Of a stretch of DNA of 64,000 bases, positions 1,880-63,374 are shown in pieces. Origin of the DNA: Malacoraja senta. Its lineage: Eukaryota. Numbering within the stretch: position 1 is the stretch's first letter; every line of letters begins with the position of its first letter. The translations under genes and the position numbers were made by a program. The notes beneath the pieces were generated by a model. That model made no database searches. It saw only the letters and a program-made list of their open reading frames with translations, and had not been told where the DNA came from. The DNA lies in contig CM075981.1 of the NCBI GenBank assembly GCA_038087875.1, positions 1,240,001 to 1,304,000 of the forward strand. Direction: 5' to 3'.

Positions 1880-1916
1880 ATGTGGGTTCCGATTCTTGTC
1901 ATTTGTTCCTTGCCCG
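1880..1916 (+). CDS. Gene 1 leader (signal peptide) exon MWVPILVICSLP(G)
   Basis: ATG..CCC G|GTGAGT, phase 1; homologous to leader exons at 20715, 36373 and 51169. Confidence 0.85.
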
Positions 1917-4900
1917 GTGAGTAATAAACACAGTGAGATACTTCGATATTCAATGTTCTTTTGCGCCGTTTCCGCGTCAGAGATGGTTTTAAAATGCTAG
2001 TGCTTTGGACTTTAGAGATACAGCGTGGACACAGACCCTTGGGCCCACCGCGCCGACCAGTAATCACCCCGCACACTAGCACTATCCCACACTCTAGGAG
2101 CAATTTACAGTTAACAAGAGCCAATTAACCTACAATCCCGAAGGTCTTTGGAGAGTGGGAGGAAACTGGAGCAGGCGGGTCTCAGAGAGAACTTACAAAC
2201 TTTGAATAGACAGCAGCCGTAGTCAGGATCGATCCTGGGTCTCTGGCGCTGTAAGGGACCAACTCTACCGATGCGCCAGTGTGCCGACCAAATCCCAAGA
2301 ATAGAAATTAATACCGATGATGGAGTCTTTTCCCACATTTTACTTGTTCGTTAACATTCGTTGTTCGGTAGCCCTTTCCATAAACTAGAGCACTGTCCGA
2401 TTCATCTCTACCCTACTGCGGACATTGGACTTTGTCTATGGAATTGGTGCGCTACAATGCCGAGAGCTACATTCTGCATTATATTCCTTTCCCCTCGCTT
2501 TACCTACTGTGCTTGAGTTTGGCTTGATTGTATTTATGTACAGTATTATCTGGTTAGATTGATAGCACACAAAACAAAACTTTTCGCTGTATCTCGGTGC
2601 ACGTGGCAATAATAAACCTAAACCTACCTTCCCTTTCACTGCGCCACGAATAAAGACAAATAGTCGCAAAATGATCTGTCTTAGTTTGATATGATAATGT
2701 AAAGTTCACAAGTTATAGGAGTAGAATTAGCCCATTTGGCCCATCGAGTCTACTCCGCCATTCAATCATGGCTGATCTCTGCCTCCTAATCCATTTTCAT
2801 GCCTTCTCCTCATAACCCTTGACACCCGTTCTAATTAAGGATTTTCAATCTCTGCCTTAAAAATATCCTCTCACTCGGCTTCCACAGCCCTCTGAGGCAA
2901 TGTGTTACACAGTTTAACTACCCTCTGAATAAAGCAGTTCCTTCGCACCTCCTTTTTAAAAGAGCGCCCTTTAAATCTGAGGCTATAACCTCTGGTCCTA
3001 GACTCTCCCACCAGTGGAAATATCCTTTCCACATCCACTCTCTTCATGCCTTTCATTATTCGCTAAGTTTATAACCATGATTTAGCTGCAAAAACATCTG
3101 AATGAATGGAAAATGTCCTCTTCTATAAATGGTAATATTTCTAATGCGCTCTGGCCATCGTTGAAGGAGCAGTGGAATTAACATCCCAAATCGTTAAACT
3201 GAAGAGAGTGCAGGGAAGATTCACAAGGAAGTTACCGAGACTGGAAGGCGTGCAATATAAGGAGAGGTTAGATAGGCTGGAGGCACAGCAAACTGTCGGA
3301 AACGTGAGCAAATAAATACAACTAGACGAAGTGGGACCATTTGTGTCCCATGTTCACACGGGAAGGCTGGTACTCAAACGCAATATTCCACCTCTCCACC
3401 AATTCCAATATTGCTGGGCAGTTGGGAGGGGGGGAGCGGCTTTCTGGAGCGCTAGTATGTGTGTTATGGGCCGAAGGTACTGGTTTCCGGAGGGCTAGTA
3501 TGGACATTGTGGGCCGAATGGATTGTTGGGCCTGTCAGCTCAGTCACTCAGGCCTGGTGGGCTGTCAGCTCAGTCACTCAGGCCTGGTGGGCTGGCAGCT
3601 CAGTTACTCAGGCCTGGCGGGCTGGCAGCTCAGAAACTGCCAAAAATTCTGCCCAAAACAGGTGAGGGACTCTGTGAGAGAGAAGGAGGAGAGGGTGGAG
3701 AATCAATTTTAGGCGTTGTTCATCTTTTTCTGCAGATCACAGCAATGAAGGAGGAAATTCTATCCTGGCCTGGATCTCACAGGGAGCAAATGAAAGGAGG
3801 GAGCAAAATACTGGGGTGAGGTTTAATACTTGCAGGGGGAATACTTACTGATGGGCCGTAGGGACTCCTGGGCTAGTACAGGCCTGATGGGTCGAAGGGG
3901 CTCTTTAAAAAAATCTGAGTGAAATCTCAGTGAAAGGCACTTTTTCTGTAGTTTTCCTGGCCTCGCACGGGCCTTTTGGGCCAAAATGCTACTCTGGCAT
4001 TTTGGGCAAAAGGGACTGGTTTCTCAGTTAATAGGGGCCGGAATTAGTGGTTTCAGGCAGTCCAAACAACTTATTTCATTTCATTTCCAATGGCATTGCA
4101 GTTTCACGCACAGGGCAGGCCAAGCCAAACAGCTGATTGCATTTTCACTTCATTTCCATTGCCATTGCACTTTCAAGCACAGGGCAGGCTCAATCCAAAC
4201 AGCTCATTGCATTTTCACTTCATTTCCATTGCCATTGCACTTTCAAGCACAGGGCAGGATCAAGCCAAACAGCTCATTTCATTTTCAATACTTTTCCATT
4301 GCCATTACGGGTTCAAGCACATGGCATGCTCAAGCCAAACAGCTGATTGCATTTTTCAATTCAATTCCAATGGCATTGCAGTTTCCATGCATAGGGCAGG
4401 CCAAACAACTCACTTCATTTTCATTGAGGGCTGACAAATCATTTATTCAAGTACATTGCATATTCACAGTGTTCTGTAGTTTCCCAGCTCAGTCAGAGAG
4501 TCGTGACCTCTCCCTCGCCATCTTGCAGACAGACTGAGCCACGTCCACACTTCCGGGCTTTATAGTCCCTCCCCCTCCCACTGGAAGGGGCGTGGCCTTC
4601 ATGGCGGTGATTGACAGGAGAGAGAATCTCAAGATTTTTTAAGCACTATTAAGTCTTTTATTTTTCATCGGTGGGAAAAATGCTCGGGGCCTGCGCAGCG
4701 GAGGAGGACTCTGAGTAAGATGGCCAAAACATCACAGCCATCTGTGGAAGCGTTTTTTCAAAAATCAAAGCACAGTACAAACAGGAAGTGATGAAGATGA
4801 CTCCTTTAATTATATAGATGCTAGAGGAATTCAGCTGGACGGGCTGCATCTGTGCAAAGAATGGCCAGGCGACGTTTTTGGTCGGCACCCTTCTTCTGAC

Positions 4901-7900
4901 AACTGGAAGAAGCCGACATATAACGACTAGAGGGCAGACACCTTGTGACACCTACTGTAGGTTCCGAAGAAGGGTTTCACCCGAAAAGTCACCTATTCTT
5001 TGTCGCCAGAGATGCTGCCAGATCCTCTGAGTTACTCCAGCATTTGTGTCTATCTTGGGTACAAACCAGCATCTATAGTTCCTGCCTATGCATAATTTAT
5101 CATTTCGATACTTACATTATAAACATGCATTTCTAGGTTTAACTATGTGATTTCCCTCATACGTATGCAAAGAGAGTATTCATCATTTAAGTGGTTTCAA
5201 CCGTCCTGCCGCACCAACCCATTGCTCCGCAGAGTCCCCACACCACCACATTCCACCTCCATTCCCGCGGTCTTCCAGACTGTTCGGCCTCGGGGAAAGG
5301 AGTGTGTCCTGACGACGGGTGCTGTCTTGGCGGAGTTTGCACGTTCTCCCTGCGACCGCTTGTTCCGGGTGCTTCGATTTCCACCCACACTCCAAAGACG
5401 CGCTGGTTTGTAGGTTAATTGGCATTGGCTTCTGTAAATTGTAAATTGTTCCCAGTGTATGGCATTGTGCAAGTTTCCGGGATGAACGCTGGGTGGCGCG
5501 GACATGGTGGGCAGAAGGGCCTGTTTCCGCGCTCAATCCCAAAGTCTAAAGTCTGAACATGGGTTACGACGTGGACCCTGAAAAAACGCGATGTTAATAT
5601 CGGTTTCAGGATGTATCTGATTGTATTGAATATTCCCATTCCATTCACATAGTTCATATTCGTAAGTGATGGGAGCAAGATTTTGCCATTCGGCCCATCA
5701 AGTCTACTCCGCCATTCAATCATGGCTGACTATCTCTCCCTCCCAACCCTATTCTCCTGCTTTCTCCCCATAACCCCCGACACCGGTGCTATTCAAGAAT
5801 CAACCTATCTCTGCCTTCAAAATATCAATTGACTTGGCCTCCTCAGTCTTCTGTGGAAATGAATTCCGCAGATTCATCACACTCTGACTAAAGAAATTCC
5901 ACGTCATCTCCTCCCTTTAAATCTGAGGCTATGACCTCTAGTCCTAGAATCTCCCACTCGTGGAAACATCCTCTCCACAACCACTCTGTCCAGGCCTTTC
6001 ACTATTCGATAAGTTTCAATGAGGTCCCCCCACCCCCCATTATTCTTCTAAACTCCAGCAAATAGAGGCTCAGTGCCGTCAAACATTCATCATATGTTAA
6101 CCCACTTATACCCGGGATAATTTTCGTAAACCTCCGCTGGATCAGCTGCAGAGCCAGCACATCCTTCGCAGATATGGCGCACAAAATTGCTCACAATACT
6201 CCAATTGCGGCCTGACCAGCGCCCGATAGCCTCAGCATTACATCTCTGTTTCGGTATTCTAGTCCTCTTGAAATAAGTGCGTGCATTGTGTTTGTCTTCA
6301 AAATTACCTTGGAGGATGTGGAATCGGTATGGGTAGAGCTGCGAAACACTAAGGGGCAGAAAACGCTGGTGGTTGTTGTGTACAGGCCACCTAGCAGTGG
6401 TAGTGAAGTTGGGGATGGCATCAAACAGGAAATTAGAAATGCGTGCAACAAAGGCAAAACAGTTATAATGGGTGACTTCAATCTACATATAGATTGGGTG
6501 AATCAAATTGGCAGTGGTGCTGAGGAAGAGGATTTCTTGGAATGTATGCGGGATAGTTATCTAAACCAACATGTAGAGGAACCAACGAGAGAGCAGGCTA
6601 TTCTAGACTGGGTATTGAGTAATGAGGAAGGGTTAGTTAGCAGTCTTGTTGTGTGTGCCCCCTTGGGCAAGAGTGACCATAATATGGTTGAGTTCTTCAT
6701 TAGGATGGAGAGTGACATAGTTAATTCAGAAACAACGGTTCTGAACTTAAAGAAAGGTAACTTTGAGGGTATGAGACGTGAATTGGCCAACATTGACTGG
6801 CAATTAGTTCTAAAAGGGTTGACGGTGGATATGCAATGGAAGGCATTTAAAGACTGCATGGATGAACTACACAAATTGTTCATCCCAGTTTGGCAAAAGA
6901 ATAAATCAGGGAAGGTAGTGCATCCGTGGATAACAAGGGAAATCAGGGATAGTATCAAAGCAAAAGATGATGCGTACAAATTAGCCAGAAAAAGCAGCAT
7001 ACCAGAGGACAGGGAGAAATTCAGAGACCAGCAGATGAGGACAAAGGGCTTAATTAGGAAAGGGAAAATAGATTATGAAAGAAAACTGGCAGGGAACATA
7101 AAAACTGACTGCAAAAGTTTTTATAGGTATGTGAAGAGAAAGAGATTAGTTAAAACAAATGTAGGTCCCTTGCAGTCAGAAACAGGTGAATTGATCATGG
7201 GGAACAAGGTTATGGCGGACCAATTGAATAACTACTTTGGTTCCGTCTTCACTAAGGAAGACATAAATAATCTGCCGGAAATAGCAGGGGGCCGCGGGTC
7301 AAAGGAGATGGAGGAACTGAGTGAAATCCAGGTTAGTCGGGAAGTGGTGTTGGGTAAATTGAATGGATTAAAGGCCGATAAATCACCAGGGCCAGATAGG
7401 CTGCATCCCAGAGTACTTAAGGAAGTAGCTCCAGAAATAGTGGATGCATTAGTGATAATTTTTCAAAACTCTTTAGATTCTGGAGTAGTTCCTGAGGATT
7501 GGAGGGTAGGAAACGTAACCCCACTTTTTAAGAATGGAGGGAGAGAGAAAACGGGGAATTACAGACCAGTTAGTCTAACATCGGTAGTGGGGAAACTGCT
7601 AGAGTCAGTTATTAAAGATGGGATAGCAGCACATTTGGAAAGTGGTGAAATCATTGGAAAAAGTCAGCATGGATTTACGAAAGGTAAATCGTGTCTGTCG
7701 AATCTTATAGAATTTTTCGAGGATGTAACTAGTAGAGTGGATAGGGGAGAACCAGTGGATGTGTTGTATCTGGACTTTCAGAAGGCTTTCGACAAGGTAC
7801 CACATAAGAGATTAGGATACAAACTTAAATCACACGGTATTGGGGGTTCAGTATTGATGTGGATAGAGAACTGGCTGGCAAACAGGAAGCAAAGAGTAGG

Positions 7901-10900
7901 AGTAAACGGATCCTTTTCACAATGGCAGGCAGTGACTAGTGGGGTACCGCAAGGCTCAGTGCTGGGACCCCAGCTATTTACAATTTATATTAATGAACTG
8001 GATGAGTGAATTTAAAGCAACATCTCCATGTTTACGGATGACACTAAGCTGGGGGGCAGTGTTAGCTGTGAGGAGGATGATAGGAGACTGCAAGGTGACT
8101 TGGATAGGCTGGGTGAGTGGGCAAATGTTTGGCAGATGCAGTATAATGTGGATAAATGTGAGGTTATCCACTTTGGTGGGGAAATGGGGAGATGCAGCGA
8201 GACCTGGGTGTCATGGTACACCAGTCCTTGAAAGTAGGCAGTGAAGAAAGCGAATGGTATGTTGGCTTTCATAGCAAGAGGATTTGAGTATAGGAGCAGG
8301 GAGGTTCTACTGCAGTTGCACAGGGTCTTGGTGAGACCACACCTGGAGTATTGCGTACAGTTTTGGTCTCCGAATCTGAGGAAGGACATTATAGCCATAG
8401 AGGGGGTGCAGAGAAGGTTCACCAGACTGATTCCTGGGATGTCAGGACTTTCATATGAAGAAAGACTGGATAGACTTGGCTTATACTCGCTAGAATTTAG
8501 GAGATTGAGAGGGGATCTTATAGAAACGTAGACAATTCTTATGGGGTTGGACAGGCTAGATGCAGGAAGATTGGTCCCGATGTTGGGGAAGTCCAGGACA
8601 AGGGGTCACAGCTTAAGGATAAGGGGGAAATCCTTTAAGACCGAGATGAGGAAACACTTTTTCACACAGAGAGTGGTGAATCTCTGGAACTCTCTTCCAC
8701 AGAGGGTTGTTGAGGCCAGTTCATTGGCTATATTTAAGAGGGAGTTAGATGTGGCCCTTGTGGCTAAAGTGATCAGGGGATATGGAGAGAAGGCAGGTAC
8801 GGGATACTGAGTTGGATGATCAGCCATGATCATATTGAATGGCGGTGCAGGCTCGAAGGGCCGAATGGCCTACTCCTGCACCTATTTTCTATGTATCTAT
8901 GTATCTAACATCCCCACCCCCCACCCCCATCCCTTCTTCAGTTTCAGGCGTGTTGTGGGGAGACGGATTGTTGTCGTCAGCTGTGGGAAATGCGATCACA
9001 ACCGAGTGTCATTATGATGCAAAATATGGCTCAAACACGAAGTACTGGTGCCGAGGGAAGAGACACCAGTGTTCCCTTTTAGTGGAAACAATTAAGCAAC
9101 ACGGGCGGAGGGGAAGAGTGTCAATCACAGATAACCCGGCACGAGGAATATTTACTGTGACTGTGGAGGATCTTATCTTTGAAGATAATGGATGGTACAG
9201 CTGTGGAATTACAACACCTGGCGGGGATCAGATATTCAGCACAGAGCTACGTGTGTATTACGGTACGTTTGTCACCGATAGACCTGATGTCTCCACTGAA
9301 ATGCATGATCCACGTTTACTCCGGAAAAGGTCAGGGCAGCACCGATACCCCCGAGGATCCGCAGCAGTGCAGAGACCTGCGGGCAGCGGGCGGGAGTCGG
9401 GAAACAGCACTCATGTTGCTCTCACCCAGTGCGGGCTCTGTCCCACTGATGCTCAGCACATTTCCCTGCCTGCGAACTGTATGAAATATCACCTTGTCAG
9501 AGGTTTGCATTCCGACTCAAACTAATAATCCGACAGGAACAGATCAGTGAGAAACAAGTGTTGCTCACGGTCTAAATATCTGGAGAATCATAAACAGGGA
9601 ATCAGTCCCCAGAGCTCAACAGATTGCGTTCAGTCCTCCCGGAACAGGCCAGTCCGCTCCCCGCACCCACCCCTTCAGGGATCCGTCACTCCCTCCCCAC
9701 ACCACGGTCTCTTTCACTCTCTCCCTCTGTCCCGTCAATGCGCCCCCACCCCTAGCAGCCACTGTCCACCCACCGCCCGGCAACTAGCCAGCCTCTCCCT
9801 GATGGGTCACATCACTGGGAACCGTCTCCCAGTTGCTGAGACGGATTGCAACCTTGATTTTCTCAGGGAACCATCCTCAGCGTCATCGCTGCTCACCCGT
9901 TCTAAGGCGCTGCTGTGCACTGCGAAAGCAATACATAAGGACAGGTACATCAATTGAAAAGTATTCGAGGGATATGAGCCAAATGCGGGCGGGTGGGTCT
10001 AGTGTACCTGGGACATGTTGGTCGGCATGACCAGGCGGGGCCCAAAGGGTTACCACAGTGTATGACTATGGCTCTAATAGCACACTTGGTAGTTTGGGCT
10101 GCTGGGAGGAAGCAGAGTAACAGAGAGATTTTAAACTTTGGAGATAAAGCGCTGAAACAAGCCTTTAGCCCCACCGCGCCGCCCAGCGATCTCCGCACAT
10201 TAGCACTATCCTGCACACACTCGGGACAATTTACGGTTATACCAAGCCAATAAGCTTGCAAACCTGTTCGTCTTTGGAGTGTGGGAGGAAACCGGAGCAC
10301 CCGGAGCAAACCGGTGCGGTCGCAGCGAGATCGTACAAACTCCGTACCGAGAGTACCCGTAGTGAGGATTGAGGATTAAAAGGCTGATGCTCCACCGACT
10401 GAAGTATTCAGACTCTTCACGGGTAGGGGTGGATGAGATTGTGAGATTCCAACGACGAAAGACATGGACATCCGACAGGATTTGATTTTTTTCAGGTGTA
10501 GGAAGGAACTGCGGATGTTGGTTTACACCGATGATGGACACACACACGCTGGAGTAAGTTAGCGGTCAAGCAGCATCTCTGGAGAAAAAGGATAGGTGAC
10601 GTTCGGGTCGACTGAGATTCAGGGGAGAGAGGAACTAGAGACATGAAAATGTACAATGCATGAAAGGTGTGTTGAAAGAACAAATCAAAGCCAGCCAGAT
10701 GATGATGGAGAGTTGGAGCCCACAATGATACGTTGTCGGCTGCGGATAAGGTGATAAAAAGTGGATTCAAACAGTGAAACTAAGCAGGACGACAATGAAA
10801 CTAATCGGACCGACTAGGGTGGGGGAGGGAGGGAGATAGATGAAATGCAAGGGTTTCCTCAACATATATAAATTAAAATCTATCTTTGAATTTCAGGTAT

Positions 10901-13900
10901 TCACTCAGTGTTTGATTGTCTGCTCATTTCCCACAGAATTCGTGTCTGCTCCAGTGCTTAGATTTGTATCGCCAGCAAATGTCTCCTGTCTCGGAGGCTC
11001 GGTGTCAGTGTCCTGCGAGTCCCACTCGGGATCCCTTCCCATAAACTACACCTGGTTTGAAAAGGCCCCGTCCACGGATTTAATGATCTCCAACACCACT
11101 GTACTGGACATCCATTGCCAATCCTTGCAATACGACCACCATCAATATTACTGCACAGCCGCAAATATTCAAGGGGAAACAACCGGTGAAGTGTTGGACG
11201 TGGAGACCATCTCCCTGGGAAAAGATAACTGCAGTTATGTGATGCGAATCAGTAACTCTGGTAAGTGGTGGAGCTTAGTCTTGCCGAAGGGCAAATGGCA
11301 AAGTGCCGCATAAAAGGCCGATGCACATGTTAAGCATGTCCGTGACATGGACGTTACAGAGTGAAGATGCTGGTTTGCTGGTTTACAGAGTGAAGAACTG
11401 CAGATGCTGGTTTACACCGATAATAGACACAACATGCTGGAGTAACTCAGCGGGTCAGGCAAGGAATCTCTGGAGACAAGGACTTTTCCAGTCGAGACCC
11501 TTCTTCAGACTGGGAAGCAGTTTATTTCAATGCAACCATTTGTTTTGTGCAGTACTGTCGGAGGTTGTATTTGGTGCAATATAGCTTGATTTGTTAATTA
11601 GGAAGCACAGCTGGTATAAGCTTTCAACATAAGCTTTTCATTGTACCTCGGTACATGTGACAATAAACCAAACTAAACTAAGCACCAAAGGTTACGGGGA
11701 GAGTGCAGGAGAATGGTGTTAGGGAAAAATGATCAGTCATGGTCGAACGGCGGAGGAGATGCGATCGATTGAATGTTCTAAATCTACGCCTGCGTGTTAT
11801 GGTATTATCTCGCCGTGTACTCATCTTTGCTATGTCCATTGGCTGCAATGGGTGCTGGTTCTTCAGAAATGGGCCTCCCAATGTTGACAAAGGCCAGTCG
11901 CCTGGCTGGAATATTCTCTGAAATTGGATTTGGTGTCCAGCCAAGCTGAACCCTTTAAACGCCCCCATAGCAACCCTGATCCTCGGAGATGGGAAAGAAC
12001 CAGGAATTATCAGTAAATGTGATCCACATGTATGTTGGCGGTGTCTTTCATCAGTTGCAAAAGATCAGGAAAAGCTTCGTCCCAACAGCCATCAGGCTAT
12101 AAAACTACATCCGTCAGTAAGCTCTGAACTCCGCAGACTATTATGGTTAATAATGCACTATTTTTGCTTGTTTTTATGTGCGTTNNNNNNNNNNNNNNNN
12201 NNNNNNNNNNNNNNNNNNNNNNNNNNNNNNNNNNNNNNNNNNNNNNNNNNNNNNNNNNNNNNNNNNNNNNNNNNNNNNNNNNNNNNNNNNNNNNNNNNNN
12301 NNNNNNNNNNNNNNNNNNNNNNNNNNNNNNNNNNNNNNNNNNNNNNNNNNNNNNNNNNNTGCTGGTAAAATCGAAAGTAGACACAAAATGCTGGAGAAAC
12401 TCAGCGGGTGAGGCAGCATCTATGGAGAGAAGGAATTGGCGACATTTCGGGNNNNNNNNNNNNNNNNNNNNNNNNNNNNNNNNNNNNNNNNNNNNNNNNN
12501 NNNNNNNNNNNNNNNNNNNNNNNNNNNNNNNNNNNNNNNNNNNNNNNNNNNNNNNNNNNNNNNNNNNNNNNNNNNNNNNNNNNNNNNNNTGTGTGAGCGA
12601 GTGAGTATGTGTATATCTGCAAGCACTGAACGTTTTAACTTGTTTGTTATATTGCTTACGGTGTACTATGTTTACATATTCTGTTGTGCCGCTGCTTAAG
12701 AATTCCATTGTCCTATCTGGGATATATGACAATAAAACACTCTTGACTCTCTCGATGTCATACTGAGAACCGTCATCATCTCCATGCAAGAGCCCCTGTG
12801 AGACAACTGTGCTCTCCTGCTGGACTACCAATGAAAAATGGGAAAATGAATTTAATTTTTTCCTCTCGGCAGAGTATAAATATTATTGTGGGCGCCCGAC
12901 CACGGAATCAGCATCGACACAATCTGTCAACACAGAAACGGCATCCGACATTCCCCCAGAGGAAACTATTCAACCCCGTTCTACTGAAAGGTACAATGTT
13001 CTCGCTATTGGTTTGCACATTGACACTATTTTCATGTGAGTGGAGATTGGGGTAAAATTCCCTCATTTATTCGCATGTGGATACAATTATTTTTAATCAT
13101 AGTGAATATTGGGAATTGAATATACATAATTCTCACCTGTAAGGTAAGTTTCCCACACTAACATGTTTAATGCCTTGGGCATAGCAATGGAAGGTTATGT
13201 ATTACATTAGAACGTAGCTCGTGAAAGTGAACATGTTGGCTCAGAGATTAGAATCTCCTATCAAAGATGCTGCCTGCCGGATAAGAAATTTCAAACCAGT
13301 CGTCTCCGGATCAGCGTCTGAAGAAGGCTTTCTACCGGCCACATTGATTATCAATACCCTCCAGAGATGCAGGCTGACCCGCTGAGTTTCTGCAGCATTT
13401 TGTGTCTTTCTTTTGTAAACGATTATCTTTAGTTCCTTGGATCTCCGTAATATTTACAAAGTTGGAGGGGATAATCCCTGATGGATTTGGATAATATTTA
13501 ACCTTGAAGCATCATCACCGTCATGGGTCATTTTTACACTGTTTTCGGGACTTCTTTTTTTAAATAGATTTTCACTGTACCTCGGTACACGTGACAAAAC
13601 TATACTAAACCAAAGTAAACCAAACTGCACTAAACTTGCTGTAACCAGTTCGGCGCCTGGTTTGAGTTTAGCTTAAGTTTGATTTATTGTCACGAATTTC
13701 GAGGTTCAGTGAAATAATTTTGTTGTGCGCTAACCAGTCAGCGGGAAGACAACGCATGATGACAATCGAGCCACCCACAGTGTACGGATGCCTGAAAAGG
13801 GGAATAACGTGAATAACGTTTAGTGCAGGGTAAAGCCAGTAAAGTCCGATCAAAGATTGTCTGGGGGTCTCCAATTAGGTAGATAGTAGCTGGGTCTGAA

Positions 13901-20714: not shown

Positions 20715-20751
20715 ATGTGGATTCCAATTCTTCTCATCTCCTCGCTGCCGG
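20715..20751 (+). CDS. Gene 2 leader exon MWIPILLISSLP(G)
   Basis: CCG G|GTGAGT; the upstream ATG of genes 3/4 (MDKT) is GTG here. Confidence 0.85.
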
Positions 20752-22721: not shown

Positions 22722-22928
22722 AAATTGTACTGACACGGGTACAGAACACTGACACAACTAGTACAATAACAGCACTGCCTGCACTTCAGACCGGAGACAT
22801 TGGTCGAGAAGCAATATGACACATCATGGAACGATTTAACTTTTCTTTCATGTAAGCTTCAAAATGTATCTATTTCCATTAAACAGTTCATTTGCTCTCC
22901 ATCTGAAAGTTTCTCCCCTCAGTTTCAG

Positions 22929-23243
22929 ATGCGGTTTGGGGAGAGAGGGAGGTAAGAGCTGTTGTGGGAAGAGCGATCACAATCGATTGTCACTATGCAG
23001 CAGAGTACCGCTCACACACAAAATACTGGTGCCGCATGCGGAGTCACCAATGTACAGATATGGTGGCAACAAATGGGGAACACGGACGGAGTGGAACAGT
23101 GTCCATCACAGATAACCCGGCACGAGGAATGATTACTGTGACTATGGAGGATTTTCACGTTGAAGATACAGGGAGGTACAGCTGTGGAATTACACCATTT
23201 GCCGACCATCCAGTATTTTTCTTACATCTCCAAGTATCTGATG
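22929..23243 (+). CDS. Gene 2 V-type exon
   Basis: 315 nt, AG/GT intact, DCHY..KYWC..QC..EDTGRYSCG, open frame. Confidence 0.9.
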
Positions 23244-25260: not shown

Positions 25261-25581
25261 AACCTGTGTCTGTTCCTGTGCTTGGATTTCTGTCACCAGC
25301 CAATGTCTCCTGCCTCGGGGGCTCAGTGACAGTGTCCTGTGAGTCGATGCGGGGATCCCTTCCGATTAGCTACAGCTGGTATGAAAAGACCCCATCTGTG
25401 GATTCAAAGATCTCAGACAACAATGCCCTGGATCTAGATTGTCAATCATTCAAACATCAGCACCTGCAATATTACTGCACAGCCTCCAATAATAATGGAT
25501 CAAAATCCAGTGAAATGGTCAACGTGTCCATCTCCAGCAGTGACGTGCCCTGCAGTTTCCTAGTGAAAATCAACGGCATTG
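25261..25581 (+). CDS. Gene 2 C2-type exon with mutated acceptor
   Basis: Open 321-nt frame homologous to 43460..43780; acceptor AG>AT; donor GTAAGT intact. Confidence 0.8.
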
Positions 25582-26649
25582 GTAAGTAGTGGAGGGAATG
25601 AGGAGAAGAAGGGGAAGTGGGGGTGGGGTGGTTCATAAGATCAAAAGTGATAGCAGCATAAATACACCATTCAATCATGCCTGATCTATCTTCCCTTCTT
25701 CACCCCATCTGCTGCCTTCTTTCCATAACCTCTGAAACCCATGCAGGTAAAATAATTAACATATCAAGGTTAAAATGATGGAATTATAGCCCATTTGTCA
25801 ATACTTGGTTGTTGGGCTCCAGAATAGATTTCCCAGTGCTGATGTAGGCCAGCTTCCTGGCTCGAACTACCTCTTATGATTACACAGCTTTAAACTAGGT
25901 TTGCCGTGACATCAGTCCAAGCACATTTACATTCCCACCACCATCTCCACATGATCCACACTCAGATATGATAAGGGATCAGAAATGTGGCCACAGTTAA
26001 CTCCTTAACGACGGTATCAGATTTGGTCCACTGTATTAAAGTTGACCATTCAGTACCATCGATAATAATCCCATTTACCAGCACCTCGTCCATTGTGGTA
26101 ATTCAGGTACATCCACCTTCTAGGTTTAAACATATTTCTTGACACCCCCGAAACATCCTGCTCCTTAACTTACGTTCTCCACTTTTACACATATCTGTCG
26201 TGCACAATTTCCCCAAAATACCCTATCTATGCTGCTCATCGATTTGCACATCTGTAGTAGATTCCCCCTTCCTCACCTGTCCTGCATGGACTTCTATAAA
26301 ACCCCTATCCAGCCCATCCCCATCACTGTAATGTTTCATGCCAAGCAACACTCCTCTCAACTGAAATTGCACCCTTTAGATTATTTTATGGATACAGGCT
26401 CTTCGGCCCACTGAGTACACACCGTCCAGCATTCACCAGTACACTAGTTCCATGGAGACAATTTACAGACCACAATTACACTGCAAACCTGCACGACCTT
26501 GGAATGCGGGAGGAATCTGGAGCTCTTGGAGAAAACATACGCGGTCACAGGGAGGAAGTACAAATTCCATACAGACAGCATCCGTAGTCAGGATCGAGCC
26601 CGGGTCTCTGGCGCTGTAAGGCAGCAACTCTACTGTTGCACCACTGTGC

Positions 26650-28160: not shown

Positions 28161-28328
28161 CTACCTCCTACTTGTCATGATAACATTTCCCATTTGCTAC
28201 AAATCACACTGAAGAATCATTACCCTGTATGTTAAGCCTGTCAACTTCTTACATCGGACAACCATAATCCCTTGTTCAAATGCAAGTGAAAAGCAGTGAC
28301 ACTGACATTTATTTCCTTGTTCCAACAG

Positions 28329-51168: not shown

Positions 51169-51217
51169 ATGGATAAAACTATGTGGATTCGAATTCTTCT
51201 CATCTCCTCGCTACCCG
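51169..51217 (+). CDS. Gene 4 leader exon MDKTMWIRILLISSLP(G)
   Basis: CCC G|GTGAAT, 49 nt. Confidence 0.85.
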
Positions 51218-54200
51218 GTGAATGAAAGTCGGATCTAGATATTCCAATGATCAATGTAAGTTGGGGTTCCGTGCACCACTTCCACAGCACAGGTGGTTAA
51301 GTATGTGTGGACATGTAATGGGGGAAATGGAACTCAGTGCTTTGTGGTGATGGATCTGAAATCACATTTGAATATGTAGACTATGTTCGTAGTCTATATA
51401 TTCAGTGGTCTATTTGCATCACGATGATAGTTTAAATTGAGAATAGAACTGTCCCCGATGAGCAGCGGGACATTTGGCTGCCAATTCAGTATAGTATATT
51501 GTCACGTGGACCGAGGTACAGTGAAACGCTTTTTGTTGTGTGCTAACCAGCCAGCAGAAAGACAATACATGATTACAGTCGATCCTCATACAGTGCATAG
51601 ATACTTGGAAAGGAAAGTTAAAGCCAGGAAAGTCAGGTAGTCCGAGGGTCATTAAAGAGGTAGATAGGCGTTCAGCATTGCTCTCTGGTTGTTGTAGGGT
51701 GTTTCAGATGCATGATAACAGCTGGGAAGAATCTGGCGGTGTGCGTTTTTACGCTAGTAACGCTCTCCGCGAAGGGACATGCTTTATTGTAGTCCGTCCG
51801 TCCTCTGTCTTCGGCCAGGGCGTTGTAAAGGCAGTGGCGGCGGTGAATGTCTAAACACGGGTCCGGACCAGTGTCGGTTGAGAAATGAATGTTGGCAGCG
51901 CAGCCGGCGGCACTGCCAATTAAATAGTAAAGTGGGGTATTTCTGTGGGGTGAGAGGCCGGGCACCGCCTGGGATTGTTGAAAGGCAGCTCCTGCAACAC
52001 TGCCGCGCTCCCTCAGTACCGCACTGCGATCCCAGCCCAGTTTTTGCTCAGGGATCTGGAGTGGGAAGTGAACCCAAATTGTACTGACCCGGGGGCAGAA
52101 CCCTGACACAACTGGTACAATAACAGCACTGCCTGCACTTCACACCGGAGTCATTGGCCGAGAAGCAATGTGACACATCATGGAACGATTTAATCTTCAA
52201 AATGTATATGTTTCCATGAAACAGTTCATTTGCTCTCCATCTGAAATTTTCTCCCTTCAGTTTCAGGTGCATGGTGGGAAGTGAAGCATGTAAGAGGAGT
52301 TGTGGGACGAGCGCTCACAATCGATGGTCCCTATGAAGCACGGTACCGCTCAGAGACAAAATACTGGTGCCGTGGGTGGAGTCGCCGGTGTGCAGTTTTA
52401 TTGAAAACAAATGGGGTACACGGACGGAGTGGAAGCGGGTCAATCACAGATAAACCGGCACTTGGAATATTTACTGTGTGGAGGATCTTCAATATGGAGA
52501 TACAGGATGGTACAACTACGGAATTGCAACATTTTTCGAGGATCCATTGTTTCCCGTACATCTCCAAGTATCTGACGGTACGTTTCGCAGCGATTGACTT
52601 GTCGTCTCCACTGAAATGCCTGATCCATGTTTTCTCCGGGAAGGGTCAGGGCAGCACCGATATCCCGAGGCGCTGCAGCAGTGCAGAGACCTGCGGGGAG
52701 CGGGCGGGGGTCGGGAAACCCCACTCATGTTGCTCTCACCCAGTGCGGGCTCTGGCCCAATGAGCGACCACCCACTTCAAGTGGGATGCTCAGCACATTT
52801 CCCTGCCTCTGAACTGTATGAAATATCACCCTGTCGGAGGTTTGCATTCCGACTCAAACTAATAACCCGACAGATCAGTGAGAAACAAGTGTTGCTCGCA
52901 GTCTGCATACCCGGAGAATCATAAACATGGAATCAGATCCCAGAGCTCAACAGACTGCGTTCAGTCCTCCCGGGGCAGACCAGCCCGCTTCCCGCCCCCA
53001 CCTCAGGGATCAGTCACTTCTTCTCCACCCCGCTCGCTCTCTTTCCCTCTGTCCCGTCAATGCGCCCCCACCCCCAGCAGCCACTGTTCACCCACAGCCC
53101 GGCAGCCAGCCAGTCTCTCCACCCGGACATTTGCCCGGTGATAAGCAGAATAACCTCATCTTTCGCCACGTCAGCCGTCGCATACAATATTTAAACCTCA
53201 GACATTTTCGTCAACCTCCCACGGGATCCCACAACTAGCCACATCTTTCCATCTCCACCGCTTTCAGCTTACTGAAGAGACCGTTCCCTCCGCGACCCCC
53301 TGGTCTACTCGTCCCCCCCCCCCCCCCGAAGGACAGAGGTTCCAACATCACCACGAAGTTAATTCTACACTTCTAAAACGTGTTTACAACTGAGGTGGAA
53401 GTCGGGATTGTGGACTCATTATGTCAGTTCAAATATTCCCTGCATTTGTCCAACTCAACTCAATCGCAAACCCAACAATTCCTCGGAGTCTGACACTGAA
53501 CCACTGTCCTCGCTCTATCCACCCACCCCAAATCTCTCTCCATCCTCTCTCCAATCCGCGGTCCAGTCGTGCTGAATTGTCCAGGGCGAACCGGGGTCAT
53601 TGGGAATAGAACCTGTCCCCGATGAGCAGCGGAACATTTGGCTCCCAAATCAGTTTAGTTTATTGTCACGTGTACTGAGGTAGAGTGGAAAGCTTTTTTG
53701 TTGCGTGCTAACCAGACAGCAGAAAGACAATCCATGATTACAATCGATCCTGTTACAGTGCGCAGATACATGAAAAGTAAATGACGTTTAGTGTAAGGTA
53801 AAGCCATCAAAGTCTGATGAAGGGAATTCCGAGGGTCATCAAAGATGTAGATAGGCGTTCAGCACTACTCTCTGGATGTGATAGGATGATTCAGATGCAT
53901 AACAGCTGGGACGAAACTGTCCCAGAATCTAACACATCATGGAACGATTATGTTTTCTATCGTGTAATCTTCCAAATGTATCTATTTCCAGTAAACAGTT
54001 CATTTGCTCTCCATCTGAAAGTTTCTCCCCTCCATTTCAGCTACAGTGTGGGGAGAGAGGAATGTAACAGGAGTTGTGGGAAGAGCGATCACAATCGATT
54101 GTCACTATGCAGCAGAGTACCGCTCCCACACAAAATACTGGTGTAGTGGGAGGAGTCGCCAATGTACAAATATAGTGGAAACAAATGGGCAGCACGGAGG

Positions 54201-57200
54201 GAGTGGAGGAGTGTCAATCACAGATATCCCGGCACGAGGAATATTTACTGTGACTGTGGAAGTTCTTCACTCTGGAGATACAGGATGGTACAGCTGTGGA
54301 ATTACTACATCTGGCGACCATCCAATGTGTAACGTACATCTCCAAGTATCTGACGGTAGGTTTGGCAGCGATTGACTTGACGACCACTGAAAAGCCTGAT
54401 CCATGTTTTCTCCGGGAAGAATCAGGGCAGCACCGATATCCCGAGACTCCGCAGCAGTGCAGAGACCTGCGGGGAGCGGGCGGGGGTCGGAAAACCCCAC
54501 TCATGTTGCTCTCACCCAGTGCGGGCTCTGTCCCACTGAGCGGCCACACCTCAGGGATCATCACTCCCTCCCCACCCCGCGCTTTGTCTCTCTCTCCCTC
54601 TGCCCCGCCAATGCGCCCCCACCCCAGAAGCCACTGTCCACCCACCGTTGTGCACCCGGACATTTCCCCGGTGGTAAGCAGAATAAACTCATCTTTCGCC
54701 CCATCTGCCGTCGCACACAACATATAATCCCCCAAAATTTTTGCCATCTCTAGCGGAATCCCACAACTAGCCACATCTTTCCAACTCCACCGCTTTCTGC
54801 TTTCCGAAGAGACTGTTCCCTCCGCAACTCCCTGGATAACTCGTCCTCCCCGCCCCCACTCCCCCACCCACTCCCCCCTCCCCGAACCACCCCTCCCAGG
54901 TACCTTCCCCTGCAACCACAGCAGATGCAACACCTGTCCCTATATCTCCCCTCTACTCCGTCCAAGGACTCCAACAGTCTTTTCGGGTCAGTCAGAGGTT
55001 CACTTGCATCTCCTCTAACCTCACCTACTACATCCGCCCTTCCAGTTGTGAACTCCTATATATCAGCGAGGTCAAGCGCAGACTCGGCCATTGTTTCGCT
55101 GAACAACTCCGCTCAGTCTGCCTCGGCCTACGCTACTTCCCGATTGCTAAACACTTTAATTCCCCCTCTCATTCCCAAACTGACTTTTCTGTCCCAGGAC
55201 TACCTCCAGTGTCAGAGTGAGACCAAAGGCAAATTGGAGGAACTGCGCCTCATATTTCGCTTGGGCAGCATACAGCCCAGCGGTTTGAATATTGACTTCT
55301 CTAACTTCAAGTAACCCTTGCTTTACTCCGCTCCATCCCGCCCCCATGCTAGTTCTCCAATTAGATTCACTGTCCTCCTGATTATATTTTACTGATTGTA
55401 TGCCTCGTTGTCACCTTCAGCTGACAATTATCCATTCTAAAATGTCCTTGTTTTCACATCTTACCCTTCCATTTCTCTTCAGTCACACTGAACATGACTG
55501 TCAGGCTGAAGAAGGGTATCGACTCGAAACGTCACCCACTCCTTCTCTCGAGAGATGCTGCCTGCTCCGCTGAGTTACTCAAGCATTTTATGTCTCTTCA
55601 AAGCATCGTAATTTGTTTTCGCCTTTGAATTCCAAAACATTGAATTGGGGTTTTGGCACGCTGGTCTTCTTCAGTGAGAACATTCAGAACATAATTTGAG
55701 ATAATACGCCTCAGACGTGCAAATGTTGAGTCCACATTCTGGGAATTGTGTTCAGCTTTAGTCCCTCAGCTCCAAGAAAAGTGCCGTTGAGATGGACAGC
55801 GTGCAGAAAGGTTTTAGGACGACGCTGACCGGACAGGATGTGATTGACGCAGGGAGCGATTGGACAAACTCAGACTTCTTTCTTTGGTGTGGAATTGATT
55901 GAGCGAGGAACTTATAGATATGTATTAATCACGAGAAGCATGTTCATTTTCCCACGACGTGTGGGATGAGGAAGTGGAGAACAGACGTAATGGGAACTAT
56001 TTAAAGAGGGGGGAATAGTAAAGTGGCATTTAACGTAATGGCATGTTTTGTAAAGATGAGTGGCCGAAGCTGAACATAATTCGCCCAAGTTCGACCTCAG
56101 CAACATATGTACAACTGAAACATAACATCCCAACTCTGTGCTGAGGGACAACATTTTCCACACATTGGGTGATATGAGGAAGATGTTGAGGCAGTTAGAA
56201 TAACAGCAGTTAAAAATACATTTTGGACCGTTGCGTAGATTGGAATCATTGCGAGTGATAAAGGGGAAACGTGGACATATGGAAATGGTCTAGAAAGACA
56301 TGTTGGTCGGCATGAATGAGCTGTTGTGATGGGCCTCTTTCGGTTCTCTATAACTCTAACATTCTTCGGTTTCTGTGCTTCGCACACTCACAGAGATGTA
56401 GATGAGCCGGTGAGATATCAACCGGACGGTTCGGGCTGAGATAAAGGGCTGCTGAGATTTAGCAACTGTTTATTTTTTAACTGTTCATACAGGTGACTGA
56501 ATGTTTGCTCCATTCCCACAGAACCTGTTACTGTTTCTGTGCTCAGATATCTGTCAGCAGCAAATGCCTCACGTCTCGGCGGCTCAGTGTCTGTGTCCTG
56601 TGAGGCTGTCAGTGGATCCCTTCCCATCCATTACACATGGTTTGAGAAGAACGAGCATTGGGTTTCAACGATCTTGAAAAGCAATCAACTGGATCTGAGT
56701 TGTGAAATCCTCGGAGGTCAAAACCGTCAATTTTACTGCACAGCCTCAAATAAACGTGGGACAAAGTCCAGTGAAATGCTCAACGTGAAAGTCATCAAAG
56801 GAGCAGGAACGTGCAGTTATGTGACAGAAATCACCAATACAGGTGAGTGTCATTTTCCCGTGGGAATACTGTTTCACAATTCCTCTTGTGTTCTTGGAGC
56901 TGCTGCTTTTCACCTTGTTGTGATGTTCGTGGGTTTCTTGGTATTTGCAAACGGCATCATTGCAGCCACCGTGAGCTCATGGTGTGAAATGCGAGAGTTT
57001 GCTTGGGGGACTGGCAAACAATTGCCTGATGCTTTCACCTGGGAGGTGTTGAGCAATTTCAGCAAAGGAGATAAAGACCTGCACTTATCACAACAGGTTG
57101 AGTGCAATACATCAAATTGCTGCCTTCTGCCTTAAAAAAGATTTTCTGGCTGCCGCTTAAGATCTCAGAGTCAATTTGAGAAAGAGAAAGAAATGCATTC

Positions 57201-60200
57201 TGTTTGGCTCCATCATCATTTAAAACCAAGGATGTACAATTTCATGATCATGTTCATGATTTTATCTCTTTTAATTTGTGTGAATCACTGGAACTTCAGT
57301 AATCTCACAAAATTAACGTGGAATCTACTTGGACGACACTCCATCAATATAACCCTTACTTTTGTCAGATAATTTTGTATCCCAGTAGGTGTGGGAACGC
57401 TCAGATTGGAAGTCCATAAGGTAGTGTAAATGGTTTACATCAGCGAGACCAAGCGCAGCCTAGGCCAGTGCTTCTTAAACTATTTCAGTGTCATTCACCA
57501 TTGAGCCTTTATCACAAAATTGCATTCACCCTCGACTAAATGTTCTTATGTTTTTTTTTGTAATTTTCATCTTATTCTCCCTTGTGTATAATTGTTTATA
57601 CAATTTATATTGTCACATGAGCAAAAAACACAATTCACCCCAAAGTAATTTCATTCACTCTTGGGTGAACCATTCATCAGTTAAGAAGCACTGATCTAGG
57701 CCACAATTTCAATGAACACTTGTGCTTGGTCTGTCATGACCCAGAATCGCGCTTGATAGACACCCCATCCTCAACCTCCCACGCTGATACAGAGCAGCAG
57801 TACTTTGCATCATCTGCAAGATGCACTGCAGCAACTCACCAAGACTCCACCGACAGCGCCTTCCAATTGCAACAGGCTCCGTGTTCAATGCATCATTCTT
57901 CACCATTCACCCCCACATTGGCTGGGAAGCGCTTTAGAACGCCTGTGCAGATGGTGAGGGACGGTGTACAGTATCTGTCTTTCGTCGCCATCTCGGTGGA
58001 ATTCAACAGACTTAAGAAAATGATTGGGCGGACTCCCCTGTACACATTCATGTATACGATAATGTATATGTTTGTGAAAGGTTAATTTTGCTCTTCAATT
58101 TATGAAATATGTTTCCTTCAGTTTCAGGTGGACTGTGGGCAGAGAGCGAAGTAAGTGGCGTTGTGGGAAGAGCGATCTCAATCAATTGTCACTATGCAGC
58201 AGTGTACCGCTCACACATAAAATACTGGTGCACTGGGACAAGTCGTCAGTGTGCACATGTAGTGGAAACAAATGGGAATCATGGAAAGAGCAGAAGAGTG
58301 TCAATCACAGATAACCCTGCACGAGGAATATTTACTGTGACTGTGGAGGATCTTCACTCTGGAGATACAGGATGGTACAGTTGTGGAATTAGTACACCTG
58401 GCGAAGCAACATTTAAAGTACATCTCCAAGTATCTGAAGGTAGGTTTCTCAATGAGTGATTTTTTGTCTCCACTTTGGCATCCGCACAAAATATTTGGTA
58501 TGTGAGAGTCTGGTGCACAGTTCTGGTCGCCGCTTTATAAAACAAAAGATGTGAAAGGTTTGGAGAGGTTGCAGAAAAGGTTCACCCGGATATTTAGTTG
58601 TAGTTTACAAATGCAGCATGGAAACTGATCCTTTGGCTCACCGAGTCCACACCGACTAGTGATCACCGGTTACACTAGTTCTGTCATTCCACTTTCCCAT
58701 GCGCTCCCAACACACAATTGTGCAATACCGCCAATCACACACCTCATTAGTGAGGAGAAGGAGCTTTCTGACGGGCAATTTGACTGTCGCTTTGAAATGT
58801 AACATCTGAGTAGCTGACATTGTCCTCATCTGTACTGAAGTGTGTCCCTGTCGATTTCCTTCATAATTGCAGTCCTGCATACACAGTTTGATTTTGATTA
58901 GACAAACAGGCAGCATCCTTGTTGCTTTGAATGTCTGACAGTGCTGCATGAACGATGCTACCTTTTCCTGCTGGCAATTCCTGAAAGGTAAAGGAGAATC
59001 CAAGATTTTTCTGACGATTTGTCTGATTTGTGGTCAGTTTTAATCACCATGTTATAGGAAAGATGCTGTCGTTGGATAGGGTGCAGAGAAGACTTACAAG
59101 GATGTTGCGGTTAGTTGAGGGCCAGACCTTCAGGGAGGGATTGAGCTGACTGGGACTTTATTTCTTGGAGCGCAGGAAGACGAGGGATGATCTTATGGCA
59201 GGTACAATATAATGCGAGGAATAGATCGTGTAAATGCACAGGAATAGATCGTGTAAATGCACAGGAATAGATCGTGTAAATGCACATACTCTGAGTCTTT
59301 TGCCCAAAGTACGGGAATCGAGAACCAGAGGACATTGTTTTAAGATGAGGGGAAATTATTTAACAAGAACCTGGAGGCTAACGTTTTTACACAAAGGTTG
59401 GTAGGTATACGAAACAAACTGCCGACGGAAGTAGTAATGGCAGGTTTTCGCAATATTTAAGAAAAATGTGGACAGGTTCATGAATAGGATACGTTTAGAG
59501 GGTTAAGGGCCAAGCAAGTGCATGTGGAACTAGTGTAGATTGGGCGTGTTGGTCAGTGCGGGCAAGTTAGACCGAAGGGTCTGTTCCTACGCTACATGAC
59601 TCTATGACTCTATGCAGATGGATGGGTCGGTTTCCAACCTGACGGCTCTGGCTAAGGTACAGAGATGGTGGATATTTGCGAGTGTTGGATTTTCAGATGT
59701 TCACTCAGTGTCTGACTGTTTGCTCCTTTCCCACAGAACCCGTGTCTGTTCCTGTGCTTGGATTTCTGTCACCAGCCAATGAACCCTGTCTCAGCGGCTC
59801 AGTGACAGTGTCCTGTGAGTCGGTCTGGGGATCCCTTCCCATTAAGTACAGCTGGTATGAAAAGACCCCATCTGTGGATTCAAAGATCTCAGACAGCAAT
59901 GCCCTGGATCTACATTGTCAATCCTTCCAACACCAGCACCATCAATATTATTGCACGTCTTCAAATCAACATGGATTACAATCCAGTGAATTGGTCAACG
60001 TGTCCATCTCCAGCAGTGACGTGCCCTGCAGTATTCTAGCGAAAATCAATGGCACTGATAAGTAGTGGAGGGAATGAGGGGAATAAGGGGAAATGGAGGT
60101 GGGGTGGTTCATAAGATTAATGTGATAGAAGCAGAAATAGACCATTCAAATATGGCTGATCTATCTTCCGCTCTTCACCCTATTGCACTGCCTTCTCCCG

Positions 60201-63200: not shown

Positions 63201-63374
63201 ATCACACTGAAGAATCATTACCCTGTCTGTTTAGCCAATTAACTCCTTACATCGGACAACCATACTCCCTTGTTCAACTGGAAGTGAAAGCAGTGAATCT
63301 GACTTTTATTTCCTTGTTCCAACAGGTCTTGAATATTCTTGTGAAAATTCGATAACATCCAATTACACTGCAAG
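51169..63374 (+). CDS. Gene 4 (3' part beyond window): L-pseudoV-V-C2-V-C2-stalk
   Basis: Exons 51169..51217, 52267..52577 (defective), 54041..54355, 56522..56842, 58128..58439, 59737..60057 (donor lost), 63326..63374. No second leader exon seen between 56.8 and 58.1 kb. Confidence 0.65.
52267..52577 (+). pseudogene. Gene 4 defective V pseudo-exon
   Basis: 311 nt (4-nt deletion in ACTGTG[ACTG]TGGAG gives a frameshift). First canonical Cys is Gly (DGPY); second is Tyr (WYNYG in the corrected frame). Splice sites are retained. Confidence 0.88.
54041..54355 (+). CDS. Gene 4 V exon b
   Basis: 315 nt, intact, GTAGGT donor; extra Cys in the G strand (HPMCNV). Confidence 0.9.
56522..56842 (+). CDS. 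Gene 4 C2 exon a (divergent subtype)
   Basis: cccacag acceptor, GTGAGT donor, 321 nt; VSCEAVSGSLPIHYTWF..FYCTASN..TCSYVTEITNT. Confidence 0.9.
58128..58439 (+). CDS. Gene 4 V exon c
   Basis: 312 nt, intact, NCHY..KYWC..QC..DTGWYSCG, GTAGGT donor. Confidence 0.9.
59218..59286. repeat. 23-bp tandem repeat x3 (GGAATAGATCGTGTAAATGCACA) in a CR1 remnant
   Basis: Direct reading. Confidence 0.9.
59737..60057 (+). CDS. Gene 4 C2 exon b with mutated donor
   Basis: 321 nt open frame followed by ATAAGT instead of GTAAGT; read-through ends ..GTDK* at 60065. Confidence 0.85.
62185..63165 (+). mobile_element. Penelope-like element, longest fragment (post-RT region + GIY-YIG)
   Basis: YLDYTSSHPASCKDSIPYSQFLRRRRIC; LYIGETKRRVRDRFAEHLRSVRN..KLEEQHLIFRLG. 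Confidence 0.85.
63326..63374 (+). CDS. Gene 4 short stalk exon (GLEYSCENSITSNYTAR)
   Basis: Homolog of 28329..28377 with the same acceptor and GTAAAC donor. Confidence 0.8.

Follow-up and report, generated by a model that had tools for sequence, protein, structure and literature searches.

MDIRs are multigenic activating and inhibitory receptors related to CD300, TREM, FCAR and pIgR (PMC3031540). They form the cartilaginous-fish branch of the CD300/pIgR/TREM/FcR-like receptors and, as far as we could find, have so far been described mainly from cDNAs. Activating forms with a positively charged transmembrane (TM) residue, inhibitory forms with a tail carrying an immunoreceptor tyrosine-based inhibitory motif (ITIM) and neutral forms reportedly belong to one multigene family. 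Here we analyse 64,000 nucleotides of the skate Malacoraja senta (contig CM075981.1 of assembly GCA_038087875.1, positions 1,240,001 to 1,304,000 of the forward strand; the whole stretch is called the window below). The window is very probably a portion of a skate MDIR multigene cluster, in which four genes encoding type I membrane receptors follow one another head to tail. As an exon-level map of four adjacent MDIR genes, it shows how a variable number of domains is encoded, namely by V and C2 cassettes of phase 1-1, by duplication of an intron-plus-V unit just past the leader and by mutually exclusive stalk exons. How members of the family decay can be seen in the same map, where one V exon is dead and several splice sites carry lesions.

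Exon modules and family identity

The window has a G+C content of ∼45% and contains two runs of N (12185–12359 and 12452–12589). When it was searched by tblastn with one V and one C2 query, seven matches to the V exon and five to the C2 exon were obtained, all on the + strand, and a six-frame regular-expression scan of the 64-kb window for the immunoglobulin (Ig) V signature revealed no further V-like exons. These counts agree with those in a preliminary description of the sequence. The same description had all V and C2 exons in phase 1-1, which holds for the intact V exons (315–321 nt; acceptor ttcag/, donor G/gtacgt or G/gtaggt, with slashes marking exon boundaries) and for the C2 exons (321–324 nt; acceptor cccacag/AA, G/gtaagt-type donor, G/gtgagt in exon C4), but not for one V exon, pseudo-V5, which is 317 nt long and phase 1-0 as a result of a 4-bp deletion. 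Splice sites of C2 exons are mutated at two places, the acceptor of the gene 2 C2 exon and the donor of exon C5. Protein and DNA homology identified four leader exons (1880–1916, 20715–20751, 36373–36421 and 51169–51217), all ending CCG or CCCG/gtga.. in phase 1. As had been proposed, there are only four: neither blastn-short nor tblastn with family leaders found a fifth copy in the window. The resulting genomic architectures are V-C2, V-C2, V-V-C2 and (pseudoV)-V-C2-V-C2 for genes 1 to 4, with the Ig exons followed by an asymmetric stalk exon (phase 1-2), a TM exon and a short tail exon. All eleven Ig exons other than pseudo-V5 have open frames and both canonical cysteines, and the V exons carry an extra Cys pair (YWCRG..QC).

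The V domains matched Pfam V-set (E about 1e-13) and, among solved structures, best matched pIgR and CD300f/CLM-1 (E 7e-21 for CD300f/CLM-1). The C2 domains matched Pfam Ig_C17orf99/Ig_2, with FCRL5 as the best solved structure. The earlier view of the V domains as pIgR/CD300-like and of the C2 domains as FCRL-like is thus borne out. A database search with V1, the V domain of gene 1, found batoid proteins. When a Rhinoraja protein (P0001) served as seed, 117 proteins were obtained at E ≤ 0.001, with dozens of paralogues per species; cartilaginous fish account for 105 of the 117, and MDIR5 (P0009) and MDIR2 (P0072), both from Rostroraja eglanteria, are among these. Assignment to the MDIR family, suggested in the preliminary description, is upheld by these direct matches and by spliced models that align with MDIR5, MDIR2 and skate homologues over their full length.

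Two other traits of the locus are also those of MDIRs. The number of Ig modules varies (four layouts) and the modules come from distinct subfamilies, as the V and C2 domains each fall into subtypes a and b that group with their counterparts in MDIR5. The large size of the family in skates is reflected in four genes per 64 kb and in a similar cluster in Amblyraja. Genes 2 and 3 encode a TM segment with Lys and Arg followed by a tyrosine-free tail of 12–15 residues, and the TM segment of gene 1 is uncharged. No intact ITIM tail was found on the + strand of the window, which holds only inverted relics of such tails. Each of the four layouts is matched in other elasmobranchs.

The four genes and the integrity of their exons

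Gene 3 is the sole fully intact gene within the window. In silico splicing of its seven exons, all with canonical sites, gave an uninterrupted open reading frame (ORF) of 405 aa:

36373–36421, + strand: leader exon of gene 3 (homology, spliced model)
37646–37963, + strand: first V exon, V3 (tblastn, splice sites)
40442–42144, + strand: duplicated cassette, a copy of 36515–38028, made up of the upstream intron, the V4 exon (41767–42081) and the start of the next intron
43460–43780, + strand: C2 exon, C3 (tblastn, splice sites)
45230–45314, + strand: stalk-B exon, ENAPCSIHQDFSITNLIPCCEMNIVAKP, phase 1-2 (tblastn to Rhinoraja P0008)
46443–46533, + strand: TM exon with Lys and Arg (canonical sites)
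47151–47189, + strand: tail exon, RCDESEPRHELQ, then stop

The gene 3 model is 71.8% identical over its full length to P0001, a Rhinoraja protein with the layout V-V-C2-TM. Self-comparison of the window aligned 36515–37564 with 40442–41487 (84.7% identity over 1064 bp) and 37567–38028 with 41682–42144 (88.6% identity). The duplication of a V exon together with its upstream intron, first noticed as a copy of 36.5–37.65 kb at 40.45–41.7 kb, is therefore real. As the copy begins 94 bp past the leader exon, no leader was duplicated with V4.

Gene 4 has the longest chain of Ig exons and runs off the end of the window:

51169–51217, + strand: leader exon of gene 4 (homology, spliced model)
52261–52577, + strand: pseudo-V5 exon, 317 nt with the 4-bp deletion, splice sites intact
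54041–54355, + strand: V exon, V6, of MDIR5 domain 1 type
56522–56842, + strand: C2 exon, C4, of MDIR5 domain 2 type
58122–58439, + strand: V exon, V7, of MDIR5 domain 3 type
59737–60057, + strand: C2 exon, C5, of MDIR5 domain 4 type, donor mutated
63326–63374, + strand: stalk-A exon, LEYSCENSITSNYTA; window ends before the TM and tail exons

Both canonical cysteines of pseudo-V5 are lost, the first by TGT>GGT (Cys>Gly) and the second by TGT>TAC (Cys>Tyr), and a functional gene 4 would have to skip this dead exon. With pseudo-V5 skipped, the model and MDIR5 align from end to end, with 75.8% identity across 455 aa. For V7, which had been placed at 58128, the better acceptor is that at 58122, giving VSGGLWAE as in MDIR5. 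The C5 donor reads G/ataagt where G/gtaagt is expected (GT>AT); cryptic donors in phase for C5 lie after 60015 and after 60030. The two halves of gene 4 had been taken for a repeated V-C2 module. This is not a recent local repeat: for C4, identity is 72.7% with MDIR5 domain 2 against 48.7% with domain 4, for C5 it is 55% with domain 2 against 79% with domain 4, and the two exons differ from each other with a dN (nonsynonymous distance) of 0.39 and a DNA identity of 73%. In domain trees, C4 groups with MDIR5 domain 2 and V7 with domain 3, and MDIR5 domain 4 is joined by C3, C5 and the C2 exon of gene 2. The V-C2-V-C2 layout, collinear as a whole with MDIR5, is common to gene 4, MDIR5, Leucoraja P0015 and Rhinoraja P0008. 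Judged from these sequence comparisons, it is an old family architecture in which two old, different module subtypes are joined.

Gene 2 has the full set of exon types and two mutated splice sites:

20715–20751, + strand: leader exon of gene 2 (homology, spliced model)
22923–23243, + strand: V exon, V2 (tblastn, splice sites)
25261–25581, + strand: C2 exon, frame open, acceptor mutated
28329–28377, + strand: stalk-A exon, HEYSCEKSITFNYS, phase 1-2
31639–31729, + strand: TM exon with Lys and Arg (SWKVGRW...), donor mutated
32348–32395, + strand: short tail exon, RHDESEPRHSTHELQ, then stop

The acceptor of the C2 exon reads cccacaT/AA (AG>AT), where all paralogues and Amblyraja have cccacaG/AA, and the TM donor reads AAG/gaaggt (GT>GA), where gene 3 and Amblyraja have AAG/gtaggt. 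As the sequence reads, skipping of the C2 exon would join V2 to stalk A in frame, and a GT 4 bases past the TM donor would yield a shorter, different tail. The gene 2 model is 76.8% identical to MDIR5 residues 227–501. Its stalk-to-TM intron contains ∼1.4 kb (29591–31013) that is absent from the gene 3 unit; a 138-aa ORF (30514–30930, − strand) lies inside, which indicates that the segment is probably a transposable element (TE) insertion.

Gene 1 is intact as far as it can be traced:

1880–1916, + strand: leader exon of gene 1, MWVPILVICSLP, phase 0-1, donor gtgagt (tblastn with the leaders of MDIR2, MDIR5 and P0004; spliced model)
8942–9262, + strand: V exon, V1, a divergent V-set of CD300/pIgR type, phase 1-1
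10937–11260, + strand: C2 exon, C1, a divergent FcR-like C2, phase 1-1
12185–12589, no strand: two assembly gaps and a 92-bp island of dispersed repeat, within the C1-to-stalk intron
12873–12990, + strand: stalk exon, starting EYKYYCGRPTTES, phase 1-2, acceptor ctctcggcag/AG, donor AAAG/gtacaa
14058–14182, + strand: uncharged TM exon, …PTYIIGVAVVLPLALVAGLFWYLKRKNR, phase 2-1, joining the stalk in frame

Aligned with MDIR2 over 308 aa, the gene 1 model shows 47% identity. Its stalk gave weak tblastn matches to the stalks of MDIR2 (E 0.085) and P0095 (E 0.43); as this likeness is weak, the assignment follows mainly from splice sites and phases. The stalk holds Y-x-C, and a basic stop-transfer sequence is also present. 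The runs of N fall between C1 (end 11260, phase 1) and the stalk exon (start 12873, phase 1), the flanking phases are compatible without any exon in the gap, and the 92-bp island between the runs belongs to a dispersed repeat that has many copies in the window. The assembly gap is thus harmless to the exon chain, as no exon or frame claim crosses it, and an extra exon may lie hidden within it. A sensitive tblastn search of 11.3–20.7 kb with 17 family tails, which recovered the TM exon and the stalk, found no cytoplasmic tail exon for gene 1, nor did the + strand downstream of the gene yield a tail exon with an ITIM. A weak match (E 0.44) at 15220–15270 pairs EIVALEGIDDI(stop)HLQSP with the ITIM region of inhibitory tails (EMTALEGTDIYANLQQP), the stop occupying the position of the ITIM tyrosine; this may be an unproven relic of the gene 1 tail, or chance.

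The 7-kb leader intron of gene 1 holds, directly upstream of V1, a reverse-transcriptase-like ORF of 573 aa (6288–8009, + strand), which by its appearance belongs to a long interspersed nuclear element (LINE). LINE 3′ ends at 976–1570 (−), 8314–8907 (+) and 24232–24478 (+), scattered in the cluster, are young copies (92–93% identical) of the 3′ end of this element.

Several points weigh against reading the window as a cluster of four MDIR genes. The joins between exons are inferred throughout, from phases and from the proteins of other species. The tail of gene 1 and the TM and tail exons of gene 4 were not seen. Three splice lesions and one pseudo-exon mean that some genes may be pseudogenes; the preliminary description had overlooked all three lesions (gene 2 C2 acceptor, gene 2 TM donor, gene 4 C5 donor), and with them the four genomic architectures do not necessarily correspond to four expressed proteins. 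For the history of the V exons, support in the cassette tree is moderate and the cassettes are mosaic. Finally, that the Lys/Arg TM segment pairs with an adaptor, and that the receptors have a ligand, is something we infer.

Taken to its extreme, the decay would make the locus largely a pseudogene array, in which Ig exons stay open through slow decay and no functional receptor is made. Besides the lesions of gene 2 (C2 acceptor AG>AT, TM donor GT>GA) and gene 4 (C5 donor GT>AT; pseudo-V5 frameshifted and without both cysteines), the missing gene 1 tail, the TE insertions in introns and a ratio of nonsynonymous to synonymous divergence (dN/dS) near 1 for several exon pairs would fit this explanation. 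Between paralogous exons, dN/dS is 0.6–1.1 for V and 0.4–0.96 for C2; such high values are usual in immune receptor families and also compatible with decay. Against an array of dead genes stand the complete 405-aa ORF of gene 3 with canonical sites at seven exons, the open frames and canonical cysteines of eleven Ig exons despite 12–20% neutral divergence, and the in-phase cryptic donors of C5. V exons are also less diverged than their flanking introns (0.09 for the V3 and V4 exons versus 0.18 for the introns beside them). We therefore consider a largely dead array unlikely.

Still less probable is that the window holds more than four genes, with V4 (41767) and/or V7 (58122) starting separate genes behind unrecognised leaders and V-V-C2 and V-C2-V-C2 being joined neighbours. 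Two points speak for it: the generic signal-peptide scan was poorly calibrated and missed true leaders, and at least one public model of the family, Amblyraja P0043, is a chimera of two genes. However, only four leader-like sequences were found by protein or DNA homology, the start of the V4 cassette copy 94 bp past the leader exon left no leader to be copied along, and the acceptors of V4 and V7 are phase 1, typical of internal exons. Single-chain proteins with both layouts exist: MDIR5 (a UniRef entry with no genomic contig) is V-C2-V-C2 and can be aligned with gene 4 from one end to the other, and Rhinoraja P0001 is V-V-C2-TM and aligns over its full length with gene 3. A leader hidden before V7, the possibility raised at the outset for position 58128, is answered in the negative by the MDIR5 protein and by the recurrence of V-C2-V-C2 in Leucoraja P0015 and Rhinoraja P0008. 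When the V3–V4 and C4–V7 introns were scanned for signal peptides, a few AT-rich hits appeared in 57.2–57.6 kb; they were rejected as meaningless, as the control leaders were missed in the same scan.

P0043 itself, named 'polymeric immunoglobulin receptor-like' (locus L001 of Amblyraja radiata, 10001–37787), was discarded as support for V-V-C2, and the genomic layout in Amblyraja and Rhinoraja P0001 were taken in its place. It attaches the leader and first V of one gene to a V and C2 that belong to the following gene, 18 kb further on, and its final TM exon is read in the wrong frame. Neighbouring genes of the MDIR family are fused by automatic annotation.

Stalk exons, predicted signalling and history of the cluster

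Two types of stalk exon occur in genes 2 to 4. Stalk A (28329–28377 and 63326–63374) and stalk B (45230–45314 and ∼29196–29273) are both phase 1-2, so that inclusion of both is impossible and they are mutually exclusive. Stalk A is missing from gene 3, where the homologue of 26515–28622 is absent (a deletion of ∼2.1 kb, as judged by self-comparison), and the acceptor of stalk B is lost in gene 2.

In the proposed receptors, the V domains would bind ligands, as such V domains do in CD300 and pIgR, with the C2 domains probably acting as spacers. The Lys/Arg TM segment with a tyrosine-free tail in genes 2 and 3 is predicted to pair with an adaptor carrying an immunoreceptor tyrosine-based activation motif (ITAM), as in other activating paired receptors. 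By homology to MDIR5, gene 4 should carry the same kind of TM segment and short tail, and the uncharged TM segment of gene 1 could mark an inhibitory or a neutral form.

The Lys/Arg TM exon (31636–31729 and 46440–46533) is open in all three frames. Its alternative frames are used by five predicted proteins in four other batoids, and both are open in genes 2 and 3. The Gnomon models Pristis P0002, Pristis P0003 and Rhinoraja P0046 read the exon as ...LEYL(N/S)..., and the models Leucoraja P0023 and Amblyraja P0043 as ...VTSHGKWGAGCSFSCL, then stop, which is the outcome expected from skipping a phase 1-2 stalk exon. A possible, if doubtful, reading is that the stalk exon acts as a frame switch through which one gene gives different products. 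With the stalk included, the next exon would encode the Lys/Arg TM helix of an activating receptor. With the stalk skipped, or another small exon inserted, the TM exon would be read in either other frame, one giving a 16-residue ...TSHGKWGAGCSFSCL end and hence a putative soluble form, the other a ...LEYLNR... segment. This reading draws on Gnomon models, one of them chimeric, and may be a model artefact. If true, the frame switch together with skipping of phase 1-1 Ig exons would let each gene give membrane, soluble and differently sized receptors.

Self-comparison further resolved the locus into three tandem units of ∼15 kb (20.1–35.7, 35.7–50.5 and 50.5–64+ kb) that are 80–88% identical, and paralogues within the cluster have diverged by 12–20%. 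The units probably arose through tandem duplication, and intron-plus-V cassettes would have been duplicated within them, downstream of the leader. Gene-carrying repeated segments are 70–89% identical, only short LINE fragments reach 92–93% and no near-identical segment was seen; the repeats are hence not the assembly artefacts that had been considered. The units differ from one another by about as much as the introns of the V cassettes do (distances of 0.13–0.18). The same layout, L-V-V-C2-stalk-TM, occurs with canonical splice sites at locus L001 of Amblyraja radiata, which shares 85–90% identity with the window in non-coding DNA. In the cassette tree, the second Amblyraja V is the partner of pseudo-V5 of the window (support 0.89) and another Amblyraja V that of V2 (0.87). 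Together, the intron distances, the Amblyraja layout and the cassette pairing indicate that the V duplications are old, about as old as the split from Amblyraja. Of the birth-and-death evolution first proposed for the locus, the decay is visible, in pseudo-V5 and in the splice lesions, but the duplications are too old for the cluster to have been caught in the act. No order was assigned to the V-cassette duplications, as exon, upstream and downstream trees disagree with low support and the cassettes are mosaics with indels.

Inverted, degenerate copies of an ITIM-tail exon lie on the − strand in the V-to-C2 intron of gene 2 (24116–24693) and in the V7-to-C5 intron of gene 4 (58753–59007). The gene 2 relic reads ...NIVYATL...TVYAGVQFRRKS...ITYSDV...IYTSL and is split by a 247-bp TE, a copy of a LINE 3′ end; the gene 4 relic contains a stop. 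A relic in the same place and orientation is present in Amblyraja L001 (20451–20679, −), which indicates that it is old, and its conservation is no better than that of its flanks. Three intron stretches (39161–39220, 52831–52890 and 57720–57824) resemble the N-terminal insert of Rhinoraja P0049 (...ESCFMDTPSSTSPADAEQQ...LSEVCIQTNKPTDQ). A stop interrupts two of these; the stretches may be cryptic exons, or intron sequence taken up by the gene predictor.

Comparison with described receptors

Relatives of the four genes are now named automatically as pIgR-like, FCRL5 or CMRF35-like, sometimes with neighbouring genes fused, and the exon map can serve the annotation of skate immune genes. That the genes are true pIgR or FCRL orthologues rather than members of a distinct MDIR family, as the NCBI names of relatives ('polymeric immunoglobulin receptor-like', 'Fc receptor-like protein 5', 'CMRF35-like molecule') and the best solved structures (pIgR for V, FCRL5 for C2) might suggest, is scarcely credible, as none of the solved pIgR, CD300 or FCRL chains matches V and C2 alike, the alternation of V and C2 and the Lys/Arg TM segment with its 12–15-residue tail are unlike pIgR or FCRL, and the best named direct relatives are MDIR5 and MDIR2.

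MDIR5 is the closest of these. Gene 4 is collinear with it domain by domain (leader, V, C2a, V, C2b, EYSCE stalk), the TM exon of genes 2 and 3 is 87–90% identical to that of MDIR5 and the DESEPRH..ELQ tail ∼75% identical. Unlike MDIR5, gene 4 has a further V exon upstream, which is dead, and the donor of its C5 exon is mutated. At ∼76% identity, gene 4 is, from its sequence, a paralogue of MDIR5 or another species' copy and not the same gene. Gene 1 has its layout of V-C2-stalk-uncharged TM, with Y-x-C in the stalk and a basic stop-transfer sequence, in common with MDIR2 and with inhibitory skate homologues (Leucoraja P0015 and P0066). It differs from them in that the + strand downstream of it yielded no tail exon with an ITIM.

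Among the better-known families, CD300/CMRF35 receptors share with the window a V domain with an extra Cys pair after strand C and the pairing of charged-TM, short-tail forms with uncharged-TM forms in one cluster. CD300 has a single V and no FcR-like C2, whereas the genes of the window have at least one C2 and one to four alternating V and C2 domains. pIgR, which binds and transports polymeric Ig, provides the best solved-structure match of the V domain and also has several tandem domains on phase 1-1 exons. Its ectodomain is, as far as is known, entirely of V type, its TM segment is uncharged and its cytoplasmic sorting tail is long. In contrast, the genes of the window alternate C2 with V, and genes 2 and 3 combine a Lys/Arg TM segment with a tail of only 12–15 aa. 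FCRL receptors resemble the cluster in their C2 repeats, matched through FCRL5, and in a domain number that varies via exon-module duplication. To our knowledge, FCRLs are without a CD300-type V domain, whereas the N-terminal domains encoded in the window are Pfam V-set and pIgR/CD300-like. Overall, the cluster adds members to a family already known, the MDIRs, and reveals neither a new type of receptor nor a new mechanism.

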